From Sphaerodactylus townsendi (taxonomy: Eukaryota), in assembly GCF_021028975.2 (NCBI RefSeq), contig NC_059427.1:125488001-125552000 (forward strand): a DNA stretch of 64,000 nt, written 5' to 3'. Below the pieces are notes generated by a model. It had not been told where the DNA came from. It made no database searches and worked only from the letters and a program-made list of their open reading frames with translations. Shown here piece by piece: positions 3,201-23,200 of this stretch. Position numbers and translations under genes: made by a program. Numbering within the stretch: position 1 is the first letter of the stretch; the number at the start of each line of letters is the position of its first letter.

Positions 3201-6200
3201 GAGTAGACAATCTAGGCATAAACATTTGGTGAAACCTTTCCTTGACAGTCACTCTTTTCTCTTTCAGTGTCCGCCCATCTCAGGCCTGTGGGCTGTTTGT
3301 CAACTATTCAACTTCTTGGCAGGCCGTGCCTAAAGCAACGTCCCACCTACCTACCTGGGCACTGCTTATTTGGAATTATGCCACATCGAATATCTTCTGT
3401 CTATTACTCTTGATGCTGCTCAGGTGAGTCCCATTTGAGACGTAAGTAAAAATACATGGAGGTAGTGATGAAGGGAACACCTACATTGGGAATGAGGAAT
3501 AATTGTTTAATCTTGTTTCAGATCTCATCAGATCATGGTTCTGATGCACTTGTACCTCTGACCAACTCACTAGTTTTGAACACTGAACAACCAAACATGT
3601 GGTCTACTTAAAGTCTATTAACCAAAGCAGGTTTACCTGTTGCTCATTGGCCTGGCAACTGTCGATAGGAAAGATGACACACTGAAGTGGTTAACCTTGG
3701 CCCGATATACATGGAATGTTTATTTCGAGGCTCTTCACTGCACAGTGGGCTTGTGGTTGTAGTTTTCCTATTTACACATAAGGAGGCAGACTACAGCCTG
3801 CAGCACAGTTTGTCTGCAGAACTCTGTTGGGCCTCTGCTTCTTCCGGTTCCCTCAGTTCTACCCATCAGCTTCACCTTAAAGGCACAGATCTCACCACAC
3901 CTGGTAGTCTCAAGACTAGAGCTGAAATTCCCTGCCCCTCCTATTCCCCCTCTGCAGAAGCAGAGCAGGGGAGGTGGTATGCAGCCAAAAAGAGACCATT
4001 GTTCTGTTCCTTACAAAAGTCAACTCGTTGTTATTATTATGTTTTATGCCTGTTAAAGGTTAATAAAGATAAAGAATGTTATTATTATGTCAATATATTG
4101 ATATATCAATATGAGCATTTAGAGAAGCAGGAAGGAGCCAGCAACATAGAACAGGGGCAGTGGCGTAGCATCCACAGGGTGGGAGGGCATGATGCCCCAG
4201 GCGGAGCCGTGGTGTAGGCATGGCCAGGCCGTGGCAGGGTGTTCCAGGGCGGGGTCACTGCAGCAGGGGCACAGGGCACACGCACACCCCGGGGATAGTT
4301 TCCCCTCGCTTCGCCTCTGAACAGGGGTGAGGGGAAAGACGTGGACGGCAGTGCAAGGGAGTGGGAAGGATGGCTGTGAGTGGAGGGAAGATGTCTGGGG
4401 CAAAGCTGTGTTCACTGTCAAGTCTCCCTGCTCTAGCAGCGAAGCAAATGAAAAGCCATGCTAGAAGTGGTGTTGCTTGCTGTGGAGAGATGGAAAGTGA
4501 AAGTGGGGCTCCAGGAAATAGGTCTGTACAAGAAAGCATGCCGTGACAGACATTCATCCCCACTGTGCCGCAGACATCTTGTGCATAATCAGCCATTAGT
4601 TGCCATGTCCAGTCCTATTGCTCTCTTGGACTTAATTCAGACCATTTACTTTGATCTATAATGACCACTGGAACCAGAAACCTTTCCCTCTCCAAGAACC
4701 ATGTTCTGCCTTCAAGCTCTTTTCAAATCAGGCAAGAGAAAATAACTGATTTTCTTTGTATTTTATGCACCAATGGAATCAATGCTACGGTGCTACCAAA
4801 AGGACAGGACTCGTTTTTTAATTACAGAAAGACTCTTATCTATAGGTGTAACAATCAAGACCCAATTTTGTGCCAAAACCTTTCTGATAGTATCTCACCA
4901 GCATGGGTGATATTCATTCCCCTATCCTGTGCCTAAACCATGAAATTAAATCCCCCTTTTAAGGTAGTTGTAGTCAGGTGTGGGTCAGACCCTCACAAAC
5001 AGTGAAACCACTCCTGTAAAAGCTTTAGACTTTATTTCAGTATATAATTAAAGATTCAGGTACAAGTACTTTTTGATTAAGTTGGTAGAATAAAATAACA
5101 AAATCTAACTCCGAATACTTTTAAGTACAGTCTCAAGCAATTCCATGGCTTCAGCACATGTAAGCATGTGAGCGAGTGAGAGCTGCCTGTTTTATAGAAA
5201 TATCCCCCCCCCCCTCATGCACACACACACACACTTCCATTTTTTCAGGCGACTTTTTCATATTTGGCCAGGATGTTAACAATTAGGCCAGCTCTTTTGT
5301 TGTTCAAATCGATCTCAGAAGCTTTGATGTAAAGCCCTCTTTCACCCAACAGGATGTTTGATAATTTGACCAAATCTTAAATGTAATCCTTGATCTGTGG
5401 AATTGGTTCACATAAGGATGTCTGTCTCTCGACATCTTGAAAAACTAATTTACAGATGCTCTAGAAAATGTCAGTCTTGGCAAGAGCTCATCAATATTAT
5501 TGATGGTAATTCTATTATTGTAGTGAATGGTCTAAAACCTGATGCTCTAGGTATCATCTTGTTGAATCACTTGTATAGTCAATCCCCAACACTTTTAAAA
5601 AGCATATTATGGGTACAACAAACCTGCACAACATCTACCAGTTCACACGCAGAAAACATCTACAACATCTGCCTACATCAACATCCTCACCAGTTCACCT
5701 GATTATCAGTTTGATGCTTTGATAACATCAGCAGGACAAAAAGAGTTCACAGCTATAACTGTTGTTAAGCAGTCTTTATTTTTAAAAACTTAACTGTGAA
5801 TATGTATTGTCGAAGGCTTTTACGGCTGGAATCACTGGAGTGCTGTGTAGTTTCCGGGCTGTATGGCCGTGTTTTAGCAGCATTCTCTCCTGACATTTCG
5901 CCTGCATCTGTGGCTGGCATCTTCAGAGGATCTGATGTAGGAAAGGAAAGCAAGTGGAGTATATATACTGTGAGGTCAATAGGTGAGGCCATCTGAATAG
6001 AAGTAGCTTGGCATGTGAGTAACAATGAAGTCTGTAGCATGTAAGTCACAATGAAGATAGCAAGGTCAATAGAATAGAATAGAAGTAACCTGGCCTTTGT
6101 TCCCTTTGATTGCTATTATCTATAGTTGTCCTGTGTTTGTGTGGAGCTGATTAGTCACTGTCTTGATGCTAGTGTTTTTCAACACTGGCCGCCAAATTCT

Positions 6201-7937
6201 GTTCATTTTCATGGTTTCTTCCTTCCTTTTGAAATTGTCCATGTGCTTGTAGATTTCAATGGCTTCTCTGTGCAGTCTGACATCGTGGTTGTCAGAGTGG
6301 TCCAGAATTTCTGTGTTTTCAAATAATATTCTGTGTCCAGGTTGGTTTATCATGTGTTCTGCTATTGCTGATTTTTCTGGCTGAAATAGTCTACAGTGCC
6401 GTTCATGTTCTTTGATTCTTGTCAGAGCACTGCGTTTGGTGGTTCCTATGTAGACTTGTCCACAGCTACATGATATGTGGTAGACTCCTGCAGTAGATAG
6501 AGGATCCCTCTTATCCTTTGCTGAACGTAGCATTTGTTGAATTTTCTTAGTGGGTCTGTAGATTGTTTGTAGATTATGTTTCTTCATCAGTTTTCCTATG
6601 CGGTCAGTGGTTCCCTTAATGTATGGTAAGAACACTTTCCCTCTAGATGGCTCTTTATCTTTGTTCATGTGGCTTGTTCTTGGTCTTGCAGCTCTTTTGA
6701 TGTCTGTAGTAGAGTAACCATTAGCCTGTAGAGCCCAATTTAGGTGATTCAATTCATCTTGAAGGAGGTGAGGTTCACAAAGTCTGTTTGCGCGATCTAC
6801 CAAAGTGTTTATGGTGCTCCTTTTTTGTCCTGGATGATGATTGGAGTTTTTGTGCAGATATCTATGAGTGTGCGTAGGTTTTCTGTATACTGTGTGGCCC
6901 AATTGTTGGTTTGGTTTGCGGATGACTAAGACATCTAGAAATGGCAGTATTCCTTCATTTTCTTTTTCCATAGTAAATTGGATGTTTGGGTGGATCTTGT
7001 TGATATGGTCCAGGAACTTGTTGAGTTCTTCTTCTCCATGGCTCCAAATGATGAATGTGTCATCCACATAATGGAACCATATGGTGGGCTTTTTTGGTGC
7101 TGTTCCAGGGCTTGTTCCTCAAAGTGTTCCATATAAAAATTTGCTATTACAGGGCTAAGAGGGCTACCCATGGCTACTCCATCTTTCTGTTCATAGAATT
7201 CATTATCCCACTGGAAGTAGCTAGTAGTGAGGCAATAGTGAAACAGGGCTGTGATGTCTTTTGGGAATTTCTGGTTAATGAGTGCCATGGTGTCTGCTAT
7301 GGAGACCTTGGTGAATAGGGAAACCACATCAAAGCTGATCAGTTTGTCATTGGGGTTGAGTTTAAGATTGCTGATTTTTTTCAATGAAGTGAGCAGAGTC
7401 CTTAATGTAATGTGTAGTCAGTCCAATATGGGTTTGTAGTTGTGCAGCCAGGAATTTCGCCAAATCATATGTAGGGGATCCGATTTGACGAATAGCAATC
7501 AAAGTTAACTGTGAATATATCTATAACTGAGTTCTTGCAGCCACATTCTTAAAATCTAAAATGGCATTACTTCTTTGGTGAGTTGGTTGAGTGGGACCCA
7601 AGAGAAAGAATTGTTGCCATTAGTATGATGGTATCTTCCTTTCCCACAGCCTCATCCTCACCATCTACGTTTCTCAGGCACGAGCAAATAGACAAGAGAT
7701 TGAAAGGCTCAAGAGGCAACGAGTACAGGTGAGTGGTCCTTCAGGTATTTCAGAGGAACGTTAGCTGATCTATAATAAAAATATCCATCACTGCATCTTT
7801 AATAACCTGTGACTGGATGATGTTCTGAATTCAGTCTGTGTAACACAATTCATCTCTTCTTTGCATTCATCTAGTGTGTCCAGGAAAAATGGTGCCTGAT
7901 AAAAAAACTGACTTTGCACCTAGTAGATCTTCCATGA
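211..7937 (+). CDS. TMC8: Transmembrane channel-like 8 (EVER2), 3' part; coding exons 211-334, 1820-1917, 2446-2629, 3049-3179, 3268-3423, 7650-7728, 7875-7937 (5' exons lie upstream of the window)
   Basis: AG/GT-bounded exons splice in frame: CVILKLSSLGMF...GYNKLYQ|CWETHIGQEMYK (TMC motif)...PRR|LLAKH...EEFLVPHNVLDIVAVQTVIWTGIFFCPLLP...FYIKK|YTLFQNCRPS...|...CGLFVNYS...|LILTIYVSQARAN...|CVQEKWCLIKKLTLHLVDLP*. Position upstream of SYNGR2 fits TMC8 synteny. Confidence 0.92.
1976..2130. mobile_element. hAT-type MITE, same family as 4158-4319 but opposite orientation; a partial copy lies at ~36585-36677
   Basis: CAGGGGC...GCCACTG termini with near-identical 8-bp flanks cagtggtc/tagtggtc. Confidence 0.7.
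3699..3842 (+). repeat. Old dispersed repeat; second copy at 14589-14729
   Basis: Shared blocks ggccc..tggaa..ttatttc, ctgcacagtgggct, aaggaggc, cagttt.tctgc.gaactctg.tgggcctctgcttct. Family unknown. Confidence 0.6.
4158..4319. mobile_element. hAT-type MITE
   Basis: CAGTGGCG...CGCCTCTG termini; perfect 8-bp TSD aacagggg at 4150-4157 and 4320-4327. Confidence 0.8.
5889..5929 (-). ncRNA. Minimal type I hammerhead ribozyme motif in the Penelope pLTR
   Basis: Minus strand reads CCU-CUGAAGA-U-GCCAGC-CACAGAU-GCAGGC-GAAA-UG-UC-AGG: core, stem II, GUC triplet and stem I CCU/AGG. Confidence 0.75.
6120..7384 (-). pseudogene. Frameshifted Penelope RT/GIY-YIG ORF
   Basis: ORFs 6935-7384 and 6120-7067 are consecutive parts of one polyprotein in different frames. 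Confidence 0.9.
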
Positions 7938-20200: not shown

Positions 20201-23200
20201 AGTGTTAAGTGTACCCTGAAAGACTCTTGCATAGAATGGATACTGGAATCCATGTGAATCCTAGAGCTGAATGAAGTACTACACAAAGAAAAATGGTATC
20301 TGTGTACTATTTATTTATTTGTTTATTTTGTGCAATTTGTAAGCCACCTTTCACTACAGGGCTTAGGGCAGCTTCCAACATGTGAAACACGGATCATATA
20401 ATAAAAAACATTTTTTAAAAAATTCTATCCATTAGATATTAATTGGATGGATATTCATGGCATAACCTCAAAAAGTCATCCTGACTGATTGGAGAGTAAG
20501 CCTAGCTTGCTCATAATGAAATTTCCAGACAAGTCAGATCATACTCTGATGTGGCAAAGGTAAGCAACAGCTGTGATTCCCCCAGTGAGAAAGAAACTGG
20601 AGAAAGCATAATGAGAAGTTATAGTAGAATGCCCATCAGCTGGAGTTTAGCATACAAGAGTGATTGGTATGTGTATGCTGTATAGCTTTCTGTTGAGTTT
20701 TCTGCTTCCAAACTAGTGGTGTCTCAGAACAGGGGCTAACAGAAGTTTCTGTATACTGTTAATAATATATTGCAGCTTTCTGCTCCTAAGCATTCTTTTT
20801 CTTTCCAGCCCTCTGGACCTTTTTGTGGTTTATTGGATTCTGTGTGCTGACAAACCAGTGGGCATCAACATCGTCTGTGGATGTAAACATTGGGGCTGAT
20901 TCTGCTCGTGCTTCAATTGCCTTCAGTTTCTTCTCCATTTTCTCATGGGTGAGTGAGGATTACTCTCTCTGCCCCTCCCCTCCAAGAGTTCATGCTTGAA
21001 CCTTGCCAGCTAGCCAGTTCAGGTATTTATCTAGAGACTGTCGAAGGCTTTCATGGCTGGATTCAACTGGTTCTGGTGGGTTTTCCAGGCTGTGTGGCTG
21101 TGGTCTGGTAGATCTTGTTCCTAACGTTTCGCCTGCATCTGTGGCTGGCATCTTCAGAGGTGTATCCCAGTGGGAAGTCTGGACACAGTGTGTAACAGAC
21201 TTCCCTCTGTGATACACCTCTGAAGATATCAGCCACAGATGCAAGCGAAACGTTAGGAACAAGATCCACTAGACCATGGCCACACAGCCCGGAAAACCCA
21301 CCACAACCACTATTTAGAGACTGTGGGGAACTAAGTAAAAATTGGTGGTTGTTATTTTGTACCTTATCACAGCCAGAACCCGTTTGAAATCTTACCTCTG
21401 CCATTAACTGACAAGGTTGCCTTGAGCCTTTCTTGACCTTAAAAAGGTAAAGGTAGTCTTCTGTGCAAGCAACCTGTCTTTACTAACTCATAGGGTGATG
21501 TCACATCACAGTGTTTACTAGGCAGGCTATGTTAGCAGGGTGGTTTGCCATTGTCTTCCCCAATCACCTACACTCTACCCCCAGGACCCTGGATACTAAT
21601 TGTACTCTTGGAAGGATGGAAGGTTGAGTAATCTTGAGCTGGCTACCTGAAACCAACTTCCATTGGGATCGAACTCAGGTTGTGAGCAGAGCTTTGACTG
21701 TAGTAATGCAGCTTACTACACTATGCCATAGGGCTCTTTTATTCTGGGCCTAGAAAGTGCTATAGAAATAATGGTGGCCTATTTTATGGGGGAGACATGT
21801 TAGTATTAGGTAAGGTATTAGGGTACTGTACCAGAGAAATCAGTGATTTGTGGGGAGGGAATGTCACCTTGCTCTTCAGGGAATACTAGGAAGCAGCACA
21901 TTCATAAGGGGCAATATTATGATCATAGGTTTTCGACTCTCTTTGTGGTTGAAAAGCTCTTGTGACACACAAAACCTTGTAGAACTCAGCCCTCTGCCAT
22001 TGCTTTGGCACGTCTTCACAAAAATAAAGAAAAAACCAGAAACAATTTAACAAGCATAATGTTCAGATGCAAAAATTATAATTAGTACTATTTGGAGAAA
22101 AATGCCTGGAGAAAGAGGTGTAAAATCTCATGCAATCCTTGGTCCACAGAGCCTAGGCTGGAAACAACGTTGTAGTACATTCAGGAGCAAAGTAGTGGCA
22201 TTGCCAAAGTTAACAGAACAAAACCATGAAAAGTTGGGGTTCAATTCCAATTGAGACTCAGCTGCAAGTGATATTGTTCTGATTTGCCTGTAAAGTCTCA
22301 GTGACAGCATGGCAAGTGTGAACCAATCTACTTAATTAAGAGCAGGTGCACTCTAATTTGCGGGACTGGGTTTGGTTCCCCACTCTGCCACTTGAGCTGT
22401 GGAGGCTTATCTGGTGAACCAGATTAGCTTGTTCACTCCAGCACATGCCAGCTGGGTGACCTTGGGCTAGACCAGTTGTTCTACGCTCTCTCAGCCCCAC
22501 CCACCTCACAGGGTGTTTGTTGTGGGGGGGGGGGGGGAGAAGGGAAAGGAGATTGTAAACCCCTTTGAGTCTCCTTACAGAAGAGAAAGGGGGGGATATA
22601 AATCCAAACTCTTCTTCTTCATTTCTAAATACACTTAAGAATTTAAATGTAGGAAATACTGTAATTATCATTTATCTGAGCGGTAGCATTGGTGAGCTGC
22701 TGCACTCTGCTCTGCCTAGAATTTAGCAGGCCAGTGTAGCCTCTGGGGGGCTCTAACCCTTAGAGTTCGAAAATCTGCAGTAGAGAGAACCCCAAAAGGG
22801 GTATACCCTTCAGATTCTGGATATATGTGCTTGTTAATTCTGATGGAACCAATTAGTGTAAATCAAACCCTTATTCTGAACCAGTAGTCTGATTTGGAGT
22901 GTTTTGTTTTGGGGGTTTTTCAGTGGATCTGTTCAAGTTCTGTTCTAATTCAGGGTTTTTTTTAGTTCAGGTTTGAATCCTGACCATACTCGCTATCCCC
23001 TCCAAGCTACTCTAGTGGATGAATTCTCTTGTTGATCAAACAGATAACTTCCTGTCTCCGCAGGGGCTCCTGATCACTTTTGCACTTCAACGCTACCGCA
23101 TGGGTGTGCAAGATTTTGCTAACAATTACGTTGACCCGGCTCCAGATCCACCCACCCCCTACTCCAGCTATCCGAATGTCAGCCACGAAAGCTACCAGCA

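Follow-up and report, generated by a model that had tools for sequence, protein, structure and literature searches.

A palindromic insert in a synaptogyrin-like intron as the probable stub of a single Penelope-like element integration

The window analysed here, 64,000 nt of Sphaerodactylus townsendi DNA (contig NC_059427.1), holds a short palindromic insert with a hammerhead motif on each strand, and the question that this locus raises is whether the insert is a mobile element in its own right, as the sequence-only reading of the window had proposed, or a remnant left behind by an element of a known kind. Its features, together with those of a coding Penelope-like element (PLE) in the same window, are as follows.

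5796-7500, minus strand: 5'-truncated coding PLE copy with the RT and GIY-YIG region, in a broken frame and of a different subfamily
20808-20948, plus strand: host exon, MARVEL-domain and synaptogyrin-like by Pfam match, ending in a GT donor
21028-21041, no strand: left copy of the target-site duplication, TATCTAGAGACTGT, 13/14 identical with 21311-21324
21042-21067, minus strand: 'tail', an extra 26 nt of the PLE ORF start, ~+85 to +113 from the ATG by alignment, at the left end only
21068-21181, minus strand: left arm, pseudo-LTR (pLTR) from ~-31 to ORF +84, PLE sense on the minus strand, ATG at 21151-21149
21124-21157, minus strand: left-arm minimal hammerhead motif, equal to the subfamily consensus (pattern scan and alignment)
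21182-21195, no strand: centre or turn, containing the 11-nt palindrome ACACAGTGTGT at 21183-21193
21196-21310, plus strand: right arm, PLE sense on the plus strand, pLTR to ~ORF +84, no tail
21220-21253, plus strand: right-arm hammerhead motif, on the host-sense strand (pattern scan, family majority and alignment)
21311-21324, no strand: right copy of the target-site duplication, TATTTAGAGACTGT (direct-repeat comparison)

The insert spans 21042-21310 (269 bp) and begins 80 nt into the intron that follows the host exon, whose match to the MARVEL domain (E 2e-7, just below the Pfam cut-off) fits a synaptogyrin. Its inverted arms (21068-21181 and 21196-21309, 114 nt each) are 90% complementary, differ at 11 positions when aligned and are separated by a 14-nt spacer, in which ACACA-G-TGTGT forms the centre of the palindrome, whilst the whole is flanked by the 13/14 direct repeat; the ~270-bp length, the 114-nt arms with 11 differences, the acaca-g-tgtgt centre and the 14-bp duplication given in the sequence-only reading were all reproduced. 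Two of its descriptions stood in part. The two pLTR ends are indeed inverted but not fully symmetric, the 26 nt at 21042-21067 extending the left arm and having no counterpart on the right, and the insert, said to have no ORF, is functionally non-coding but the minus strand of its left arm still carries the PLE ATG and, with it, ~37 codons of the beginning of the ORF. Only the first 28-37 codons of the PLE ORF remain per arm, the RT and GIY-YIG ORF being absent from the unit. The final 3 bases of the left duplication copy (...CGACA) are equally attributable to the end of the element, relatives of which end ...GCCTTCGACA, giving a tail of 26 nt, or of 29 nt when the shared bases are included. 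Both outer junctions were confirmed by read-derived contigs, and its own centre was spanned by none of the read-derived contigs listed.

Read in the sense direction, each arm consists of ~30-45 nt of pLTR, the hammerhead motif and the PLE ORF start, with the ATG placed inside the motif (CUGAAG-AUG). The arms are 80% alike to the 3' end of the coding PLE copy and 87% alike to the start of the Liasis PLE, and are alignable with Anolis and Pogona copies. The coding copy displays a native pLTR, hammerhead and tail at its 3' end (5796-6120), and proteins of Anolis sagrei, Pogona and Liasis match its RT/GIY-YIG region at 85%, 71% and 68% identity, respectively. The left arm terminates in ...GCCTTCGACA, ~+113 from the ATG, a terminus common to the full copies in the window and in Anolis, and the right arm terminates at ~+84 in an AC-rich stretch, so that the outer ends of the two arms lie ~29 nt apart in template position. 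As the coding copy ends likewise and is 80% alike, both 3' ends of the palindrome must face outward, with both copies 5'-truncated at the centre. Judged by this homology, each arm represents the stretch in which pLTR meets ORF start in a Poseidon-type PLE, in keeping with the earlier view that the insert derives from Penelope pLTRs with minimal hammerheads and is related to, yet distinct from, the coding element (there placed at 5807-7504). At the centre, contigs that fit the insert from 21179-21182 rightward carry upstream sequence (...CCCTTCTCACTA) which aligns with the native Liasis and Pogona pLTRs downstream of a TATA-like motif, so the central ACACAGTGTGT is native pLTR sequence, ~30 nt after that motif. 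This would place ACACAGTGTGT where the pLTR transcription start is expected, a position suggested solely by the TATA-like motif ~30 nt upstream. A fold-back DNA transposon or MITE was rejected as an identity for the insert, since its arms are PLE sequence with PLE 3' boundaries.

Insertions of this architecture have been described before. Most PLE insertions are truncated (PMC8557442), and they often carry an inverted 5'-truncated copy, with a 30-40-bp 'tail' confined to one end and a short duplication flanking the unit (PMC8557442, PMC3846280); a tail at one end only is also reported in PMC11167929, and palindromes occur at inverted PLE junctions (PMC3846280). The insert likewise has two copies head to head with their 3' ends outward inside a single target-site duplication, arms homologous to the pLTR/ORF-start junction and a one-sided tail. 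With the inverted-pLTR units of the Penelope/Poseidon clade (PMC8557442 Fig. 2, PMC3846280 Fig. 2) it shares the outward 5'-truncated head-to-head copies, the ~30-bp tail at one end, the variable short duplication, the junction palindrome and the hammerhead at the pLTR/ORF junction, but it differs from them in that its copies are only ~125-155 nt long, with no ORF and no direct pLTR pair, which makes it the smallest form. The insert is thus an already described kind of PLE insertion remnant, and a new class of ambisense ribozyme element is unsupported.

An experimentally characterised relative is the Poseidon protein of Anolis carolinensis (PAc), which when purified cuts and extends both target strands in vitro, starting reverse transcription internally at two sites, the sequence between which is the tail (PMC11167929). 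The PAc ORF starts at hammerhead stem II, the cut site lies 26 nt downstream of the ATG, and the ribozyme needs the PAc protein in vitro (PMC11167929). The left arm matches this layout, with C3 to G8 upstream of the ATG, the end of GAAACGUU 26 nt downstream of it and ~29 nt of template between the two outer ends of the insert. Compared with PAc (PMC11167929; copies in loci L006-L011 of the survey below), the insert shares the ORF start inside the hammerhead (CUGARG-AUG), the predicted cut 26 nt after the ATG, 3' boundaries near +84 and +113-120, a one-sided A+T-rich target and the involvement of both target strands; in contrast, its subfamily is at most ~80% alike, its H17 is U rather than C, its stem II carries an A.A mismatch and its ribozyme is a predicted one, that of PAc having been tested. 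Retrozymes (plant LTR; animal non-LTR, bioRxiv 10.64898/2026.07.22.740005) are likewise hammerhead-bearing, non-coding relatives of PLE pLTRs, but their repeats are direct or tandem, and double self-cleavage turns their RNA into circles, whereas the insert is an inverted pair with one motif decayed. Retrozyme identity was rejected, the repeats being inverted and no tandem copy being present in the 64-kb window.

To place the insert among its relatives, contigs carrying three species labels (organisms A, B and C) and one RNA run were aligned to 20960-21500 at a likeness of at least 85%; contigs of the PLE repeat are ~100 nt long, and the listing shows only a few of the 245,000 pieces. Summed word depth, which is not a copy number, was 1e6-4e7 on the arms vs. 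~50-70 on the flanks, and the repeat family of which the arms are part is very large. Hundreds of family contigs terminate at 21039, near 21068-21076 and at 21309, where they adjoin unrelated A+T-rich sequence, so both outer ends of the insert are canonical family boundaries. Contigs of organisms A and B run from the unique flank into the left arm, and those of A, B and C run from it into the right arm; as flank contigs of all three enter the insert, the insertion is fixed and older than the split of B/C from the window, whose flank differs from that of B/C at 6 sites and by 2 indels in 187 nt. 

The two arms have decayed separately. Relative to the family majority the left arm has the private changes 21167C and 21171T, and the right arm 21228A, 21229T, 21244A and 21270T (the family majority at 21228, 21229 and 21244 is G, C and G), whilst at one site where the family had CG, one arm now reads CA and the other TG (21099/21100 vs. 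21277/21278). This opposite loss of CpG, together with the private changes, implies arms that were alike at birth and decayed independently afterwards. Three of the ~6 private changes fall within 12 stem positions, a weak oddity noticed after the fact (~0.03, rough Poisson).

Given a family of this size, two unrelated events could also have produced the palindrome, either a second PLE fragment landing beside an older one or an inverted duplication, at the DNA level, of one truncated insertion, and the extreme abundance of PLE fragments, seen in the depth of the arms relative to the flanks, would speak for such an origin. Yet a single 13/14 duplication brackets the whole palindrome, with no second duplication inside, inverted duplication at the DNA level would leave the flank inverted and not directly repeated, and the single-duplication design recurs in eight other units, which together leave such a coincidence highly improbable.

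We consider the insert to be the dead-on-arrival product of a single Poseidon-type PLE integration by two-strand priming, with a probability of roughly 0.55. The element endonuclease would make a 14-bp staggered cut, and the two 3' ends exposed by it would then serve as primers for reverse transcription of element RNA, from the two internal start sites already known, the start near +113 of the ORF keeping the tail and that near +84 lacking it. Each cDNA would copy the first ~125-155 nt of the template (ORF start, hammerhead and ~30-45 nt of pLTR) and stop near the expected pLTR transcription start, at about -31 to -45, after which the two cDNAs, which have the same polarity, would be connected head to head, at the native palindrome ACACAGTGTGT or within it, and the gaps filled. 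The outcome would be a 269-bp non-coding palindrome within one duplication, unable to move as a unit and left to neutral decay in the synaptogyrin-like intron. What we infer here is that both strands were primed, where the RNA 5' end lies and how the cDNAs were joined. The canonical +84 and +113 boundaries at the outer ends are expected of two reverse-transcription starts and not of a copied hairpin. L1 twin-priming inversions offer a parallel, in that two cDNAs from the two ends of a staggered break are joined in inverted orientation within one duplication; in L1, however, annealing of the second primer is internal to that same RNA, and an inversion with deletion or duplication results, not two outward-facing copies of one 3' segment. 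One feature of the insert sits less easily with two-strand priming: two cDNAs truncated independently of each other would not be expected to give symmetric arms, unless both reached the same RNA 5' end or another cause such as self-priming was at work.

Comparable units were sought in 258 kb around PLE genes (three loci of Anolis sagrei, one of Liasis, one of Pogona and six of Anolis carolinensis), with every 3' unit positioned relative to its ATG; the survey covered these loci and the window. It yielded three mini fold-backs and one 3.7-kb fold-back that are symmetric to within 2-10 nt, and these are listed with that of the window.

Window 21042-21310: duplication 13/14, arms 90% identical, centre ~-42 from the ATG
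L001:2120-2391: duplication 12/12, arms 96% identical, centre -37/-32
L003:5598-5808: duplication 12/13, arms 98% identical, centre -1/-7
L011:12910-13162: no duplication found, arms 92% identical, centre -18/-15
L008:8111-11857: duplication of 9 bp, arms 100% identical, centre ~1.7 kb upstream

All four surveyed symmetric fold-backs are in Anolis, so the comparison is with Anolis and not with the window's own genome. The largest, in L008, is 3.7 kb long with arms of 1851 nt and a loop of 10 nt. Five more head-to-head units in the 258 kb are asymmetric, with duplications of 10-13 bp; duplications of 9-13 bp accompany eight of the nine surveyed units, the sole exception being L011:12910-13162, around which none was found. 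Exactly one end bears a tail in nine of ten units (the nine surveyed and the window copy), and again it is L011:12910-13162 that departs from the pattern, appearing tailed at both ends. The centres of the four surveyed fold-backs lie at about -35, -16, -4 and ~1.7 kb upstream and vary even within one subfamily, and arm identity tracks apparent age, from young to old 100%, 98%, 96%, 92% and, in the window, 90%.

These results bear directly on the proposal that the insert is an ambisense, hairpin-shaped, non-autonomous element, in which a hairpin transcribed from either strand would be copied whole by PLE enzymes in trans, spread as a family and present a ribozyme on both strands. A few contigs of 86-90% identity do bridge a similar centre, which means that similar junctions are present elsewhere in the Sphaerodactylus townsendi genome, and for mobilisation in trans pLTR sequences by themselves can be enough (PMC3846280). 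A copied hairpin, however, would have one canonical reverse-transcription start and one template-5' end, whereas both ends of the insert are canonical starts, and the Anolis fold-backs differ in their centres and belong to different subfamilies. The fall of arm identity with age fits arms that were identical at birth, and the changes specific to one arm are family minorities at the levels expected from parallel decay. Varying centres, and arm identity rising from old to young, are therefore a poor fit to a single hairpin master family and point to an integration by-product instead. The minimal template defined in vitro, moreover, has to include the initial 172 nt of the ORF (PMC11167929), which neither arm has, and the plus-strand motif is broken (see below). 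With canonical 3' ends, varying centres and a published PLE architecture all against it, we regard mobilisation of the insert as a hairpin in trans as improbable. Exact patterns for the centre and the hammerhead core had no match in metagenome or viral contigs, collections that apparently hold no squamate DNA and so have no bearing on copy number.

The same fold-backs bring self-priming into consideration, a snap-back route to the same dead-on-arrival insertion in which one cDNA runs from +113 to about -40, the reverse transcriptase then copies its own cDNA, and the copy-back halts short of the tail and is connected to the opposite side of the staggered break, leaving a palindrome with a tiny loop. 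Loops of 1-10 nt are found in all five symmetric fold-backs, over arms ranging from 86 to 1851 nt, and would follow automatically from a snap-back; self-priming has been inferred for Penelope elements from palindromes at inverted junctions (PMC3846280), and the apparent tails at both ends of L011:12910-13162 are what a complete copy-back would give. On the other hand, self-priming leaves unexplained why synthesis stops ~29 nt before the template end, exactly at the other start site, in four of the five symmetric cases, it cannot yield the asymmetric units with a tailed short arm and a tail-less long arm (L009, L011), and a 5-bp stem with a 1-nt loop, as at the centre of the window copy, cannot form within one strand. 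We view it as a possible but somewhat doubtful route. Two-strand priming and self-priming alike make the insert a dead-on-arrival PLE stub. Run-off at one fixed RNA 5' end was rejected as the sole cause of the symmetry, given centres at -35 and -4 within one Anolis sagrei subfamily and arms of 1851 nt.

The hammerhead motifs give a separate view of what the insert could do. The pattern CTGANGA-N(10-30)-GAAACGT occurs twice in the 64 kb, once per strand, against a chance expectation of 0.02, at 21124-21157 (minus) and 21220-21253 (plus), so that a CUGAAGA...GAAACGUU motif lies on each strand. The conserved core (C3 U4 G5 A6 N7 G8 A9, G12 A13 A14, A15.1, U16.1, H17) is present in both arms, with an extra U after A9 that is found in both arms and all aligned relatives. 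The left-arm motif reads CUGAAGA, the extra U, a 6-bp stem II with one A.A mismatch, GAAA and ACGU, with a predicted cut after GAAACGUU; five of its six stem II pairs can form, and the A.A is shared with the subfamily. Stem II of the plus-strand copy retains three of six pairs, with 10.1-11.1 (G10.1-C11.1) and 10.3-11.3 broken, and has three private substitutions (21228A, 21229T, 21244A), of which two break pairs; its start codon is lost as well (ATG to ATA). The claim of one CUGAAGA hammerhead per arm is thus right as to the core letters, but stem II of the plus-strand copy has decayed. Across ten sequences (the insert motif with nine relatives aligned), pairing in stem II holds in 92% of cells vs. 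at most 42% when the partner is slid, whilst covariation is weak to modest, one pair being changed on both sides. Helix I has three conserved pairs only, and the ACGU palindrome, through which a helix III could form in a dimer, is in place; a motif with helix III reduced to this palindrome would require a dimer (PMC4209133). No Rfam hammerhead model matched, either at the gathering threshold or at E up to 10, as expected of motifs without helix III. In the one RNA run, read ends showed no pile-up at the expected cut site, and PMC11167929 likewise reports no such clustering of read ends.

Folding predictions favour the palindrome over either ribozyme. The predicted fold of the whole insert, taken as one RNA, is a hairpin with an energy of -207.9 kcal/mol (z -23); for a single arm the value is -10 to -13 kcal/mol, which shuffled sequence equals. 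The predicted hairpin beats either hammerhead fold by ~195 kcal/mol and would bury both motifs. The expectation of a long dsRNA in the transcript is upheld by this predicted duplex; that of a ribozyme whichever strand is transcribed is not, given the broken plus-strand stem II, including G10.1-C11.1, and the ~195 kcal/mol by which the hairpin outcompetes it. A microRNA or another curated hairpin RNA was rejected, the best Rfam match (MIR173, 38 bits vs. a threshold of 70) being below threshold and such matches reflecting hairpin shape only. A near-perfect duplex of ~115 bp, 80 nt behind a splice donor, is a possible substrate for RNA editing or a source of splicing effects. RNA run depth was zero on both intron flanks. 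The A>G and T>C differences in the arms, of the kind that A-to-I editing would give, occurred in similar shares in DNA contigs, which makes them differences between paralogous copies.

The locus itself is of little weight, being an old, fixed and decayed intronic copy in a very large repeat family, and its interest lies in the small class of structures to which it belongs. Tentatively, PLE integration may produce symmetric mini fold-backs regularly and by rule, with one tailed end, one tail-less end and a turn at most ~45 nt upstream of the ATG. They could arise if, on both target strands, the enzyme began at whichever start site lies closest to the 5' end of its mRNA and ran off at the cap. 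It is less likely that some of them form a self-propagating hairpin family. If the product is rule-bound, a fossil census recording centre, tail state and duplication length could separate twin priming from self-priming, an open point in the PLE cycle. Mini fold-backs serve as natural records of PLE integration, and their regularities, namely symmetry, one tail and duplications of 9-14 bp, agree with the two-strand cutting and extension shown in vitro in 2024.

All six long head-to-head units of PAc, the Anolis carolinensis Poseidon-type Penelope-like element (PLE), are bounded by 9-13-bp duplications (loci L006-L011), and in each exactly one end bears the tail, the stretch of ORF start between the two reverse-transcription start sites. 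When these units are taken together with the four mini fold-backs (the window palindrome at 21042-21310, two in Anolis sagrei at L001 and L003, and one in A. carolinensis at L011), exactly one end is tailed in 9 of 10 units, so the start site used at one end of a PLE insertion does not look independent of the one used at the other. One of the long units is a symmetric fold-back:

L008:8111-11857 (Anolis carolinensis, CM069367.1): 3.7-kb PLE fold-back.

Its arms, of 1851 nt each, share 100% identity around a 10-nt loop, the target duplication is 9 bp, and the tail is present at one end only, in what looks like a very young event. Symmetry this exact over such long arms favours either self-priming or the copying of a single truncated RNA to its end.

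The palindrome arms (window 21031-21195) are 87% similar to the start of a python PLE (Liasis olivaceus, L004:11089-11173), and share just 80% similarity with the window's own PLE copy, at a distance of 15 kb:

5796-7500, - strand: 5'-truncated PLE copy whose reading frame is broken, the RT and GIY-YIG regions falling in two frames that overlap.

Several Poseidon lineages appear to be common to squamates. The protein of the truncated copy is 85% identical to Anolis sagrei models, which is unexpectedly close if the host is a gecko, and could reflect old shared lineages or horizontal transfer. Its RT/EN region also shares 60% identity with a protein recorded under Escherichia coli (P0005, 'hypothetical protein, partial') on a 2.6-kb contig, a bacterial entry that has probably been contaminated by animal DNA.

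In the host-sense (right) arm of the palindrome, three of the ~6 private changes (21228, 21229 and 21244) lie in stem II of the hammerhead, which comprises 12 positions, and the antisense arm has no private changes in hammerhead stem II. The clustering could be chance, at a probability of roughly 0.03 calculated after the fact, or it could reflect mild selection against a predicted self-cleaving motif in the pre-mRNA. The same intron also contains another short, high-copy repeat of ~40 bp (21435-21472), where summed word depth is near 1e4 vs. ~50 in the surrounding sequence.
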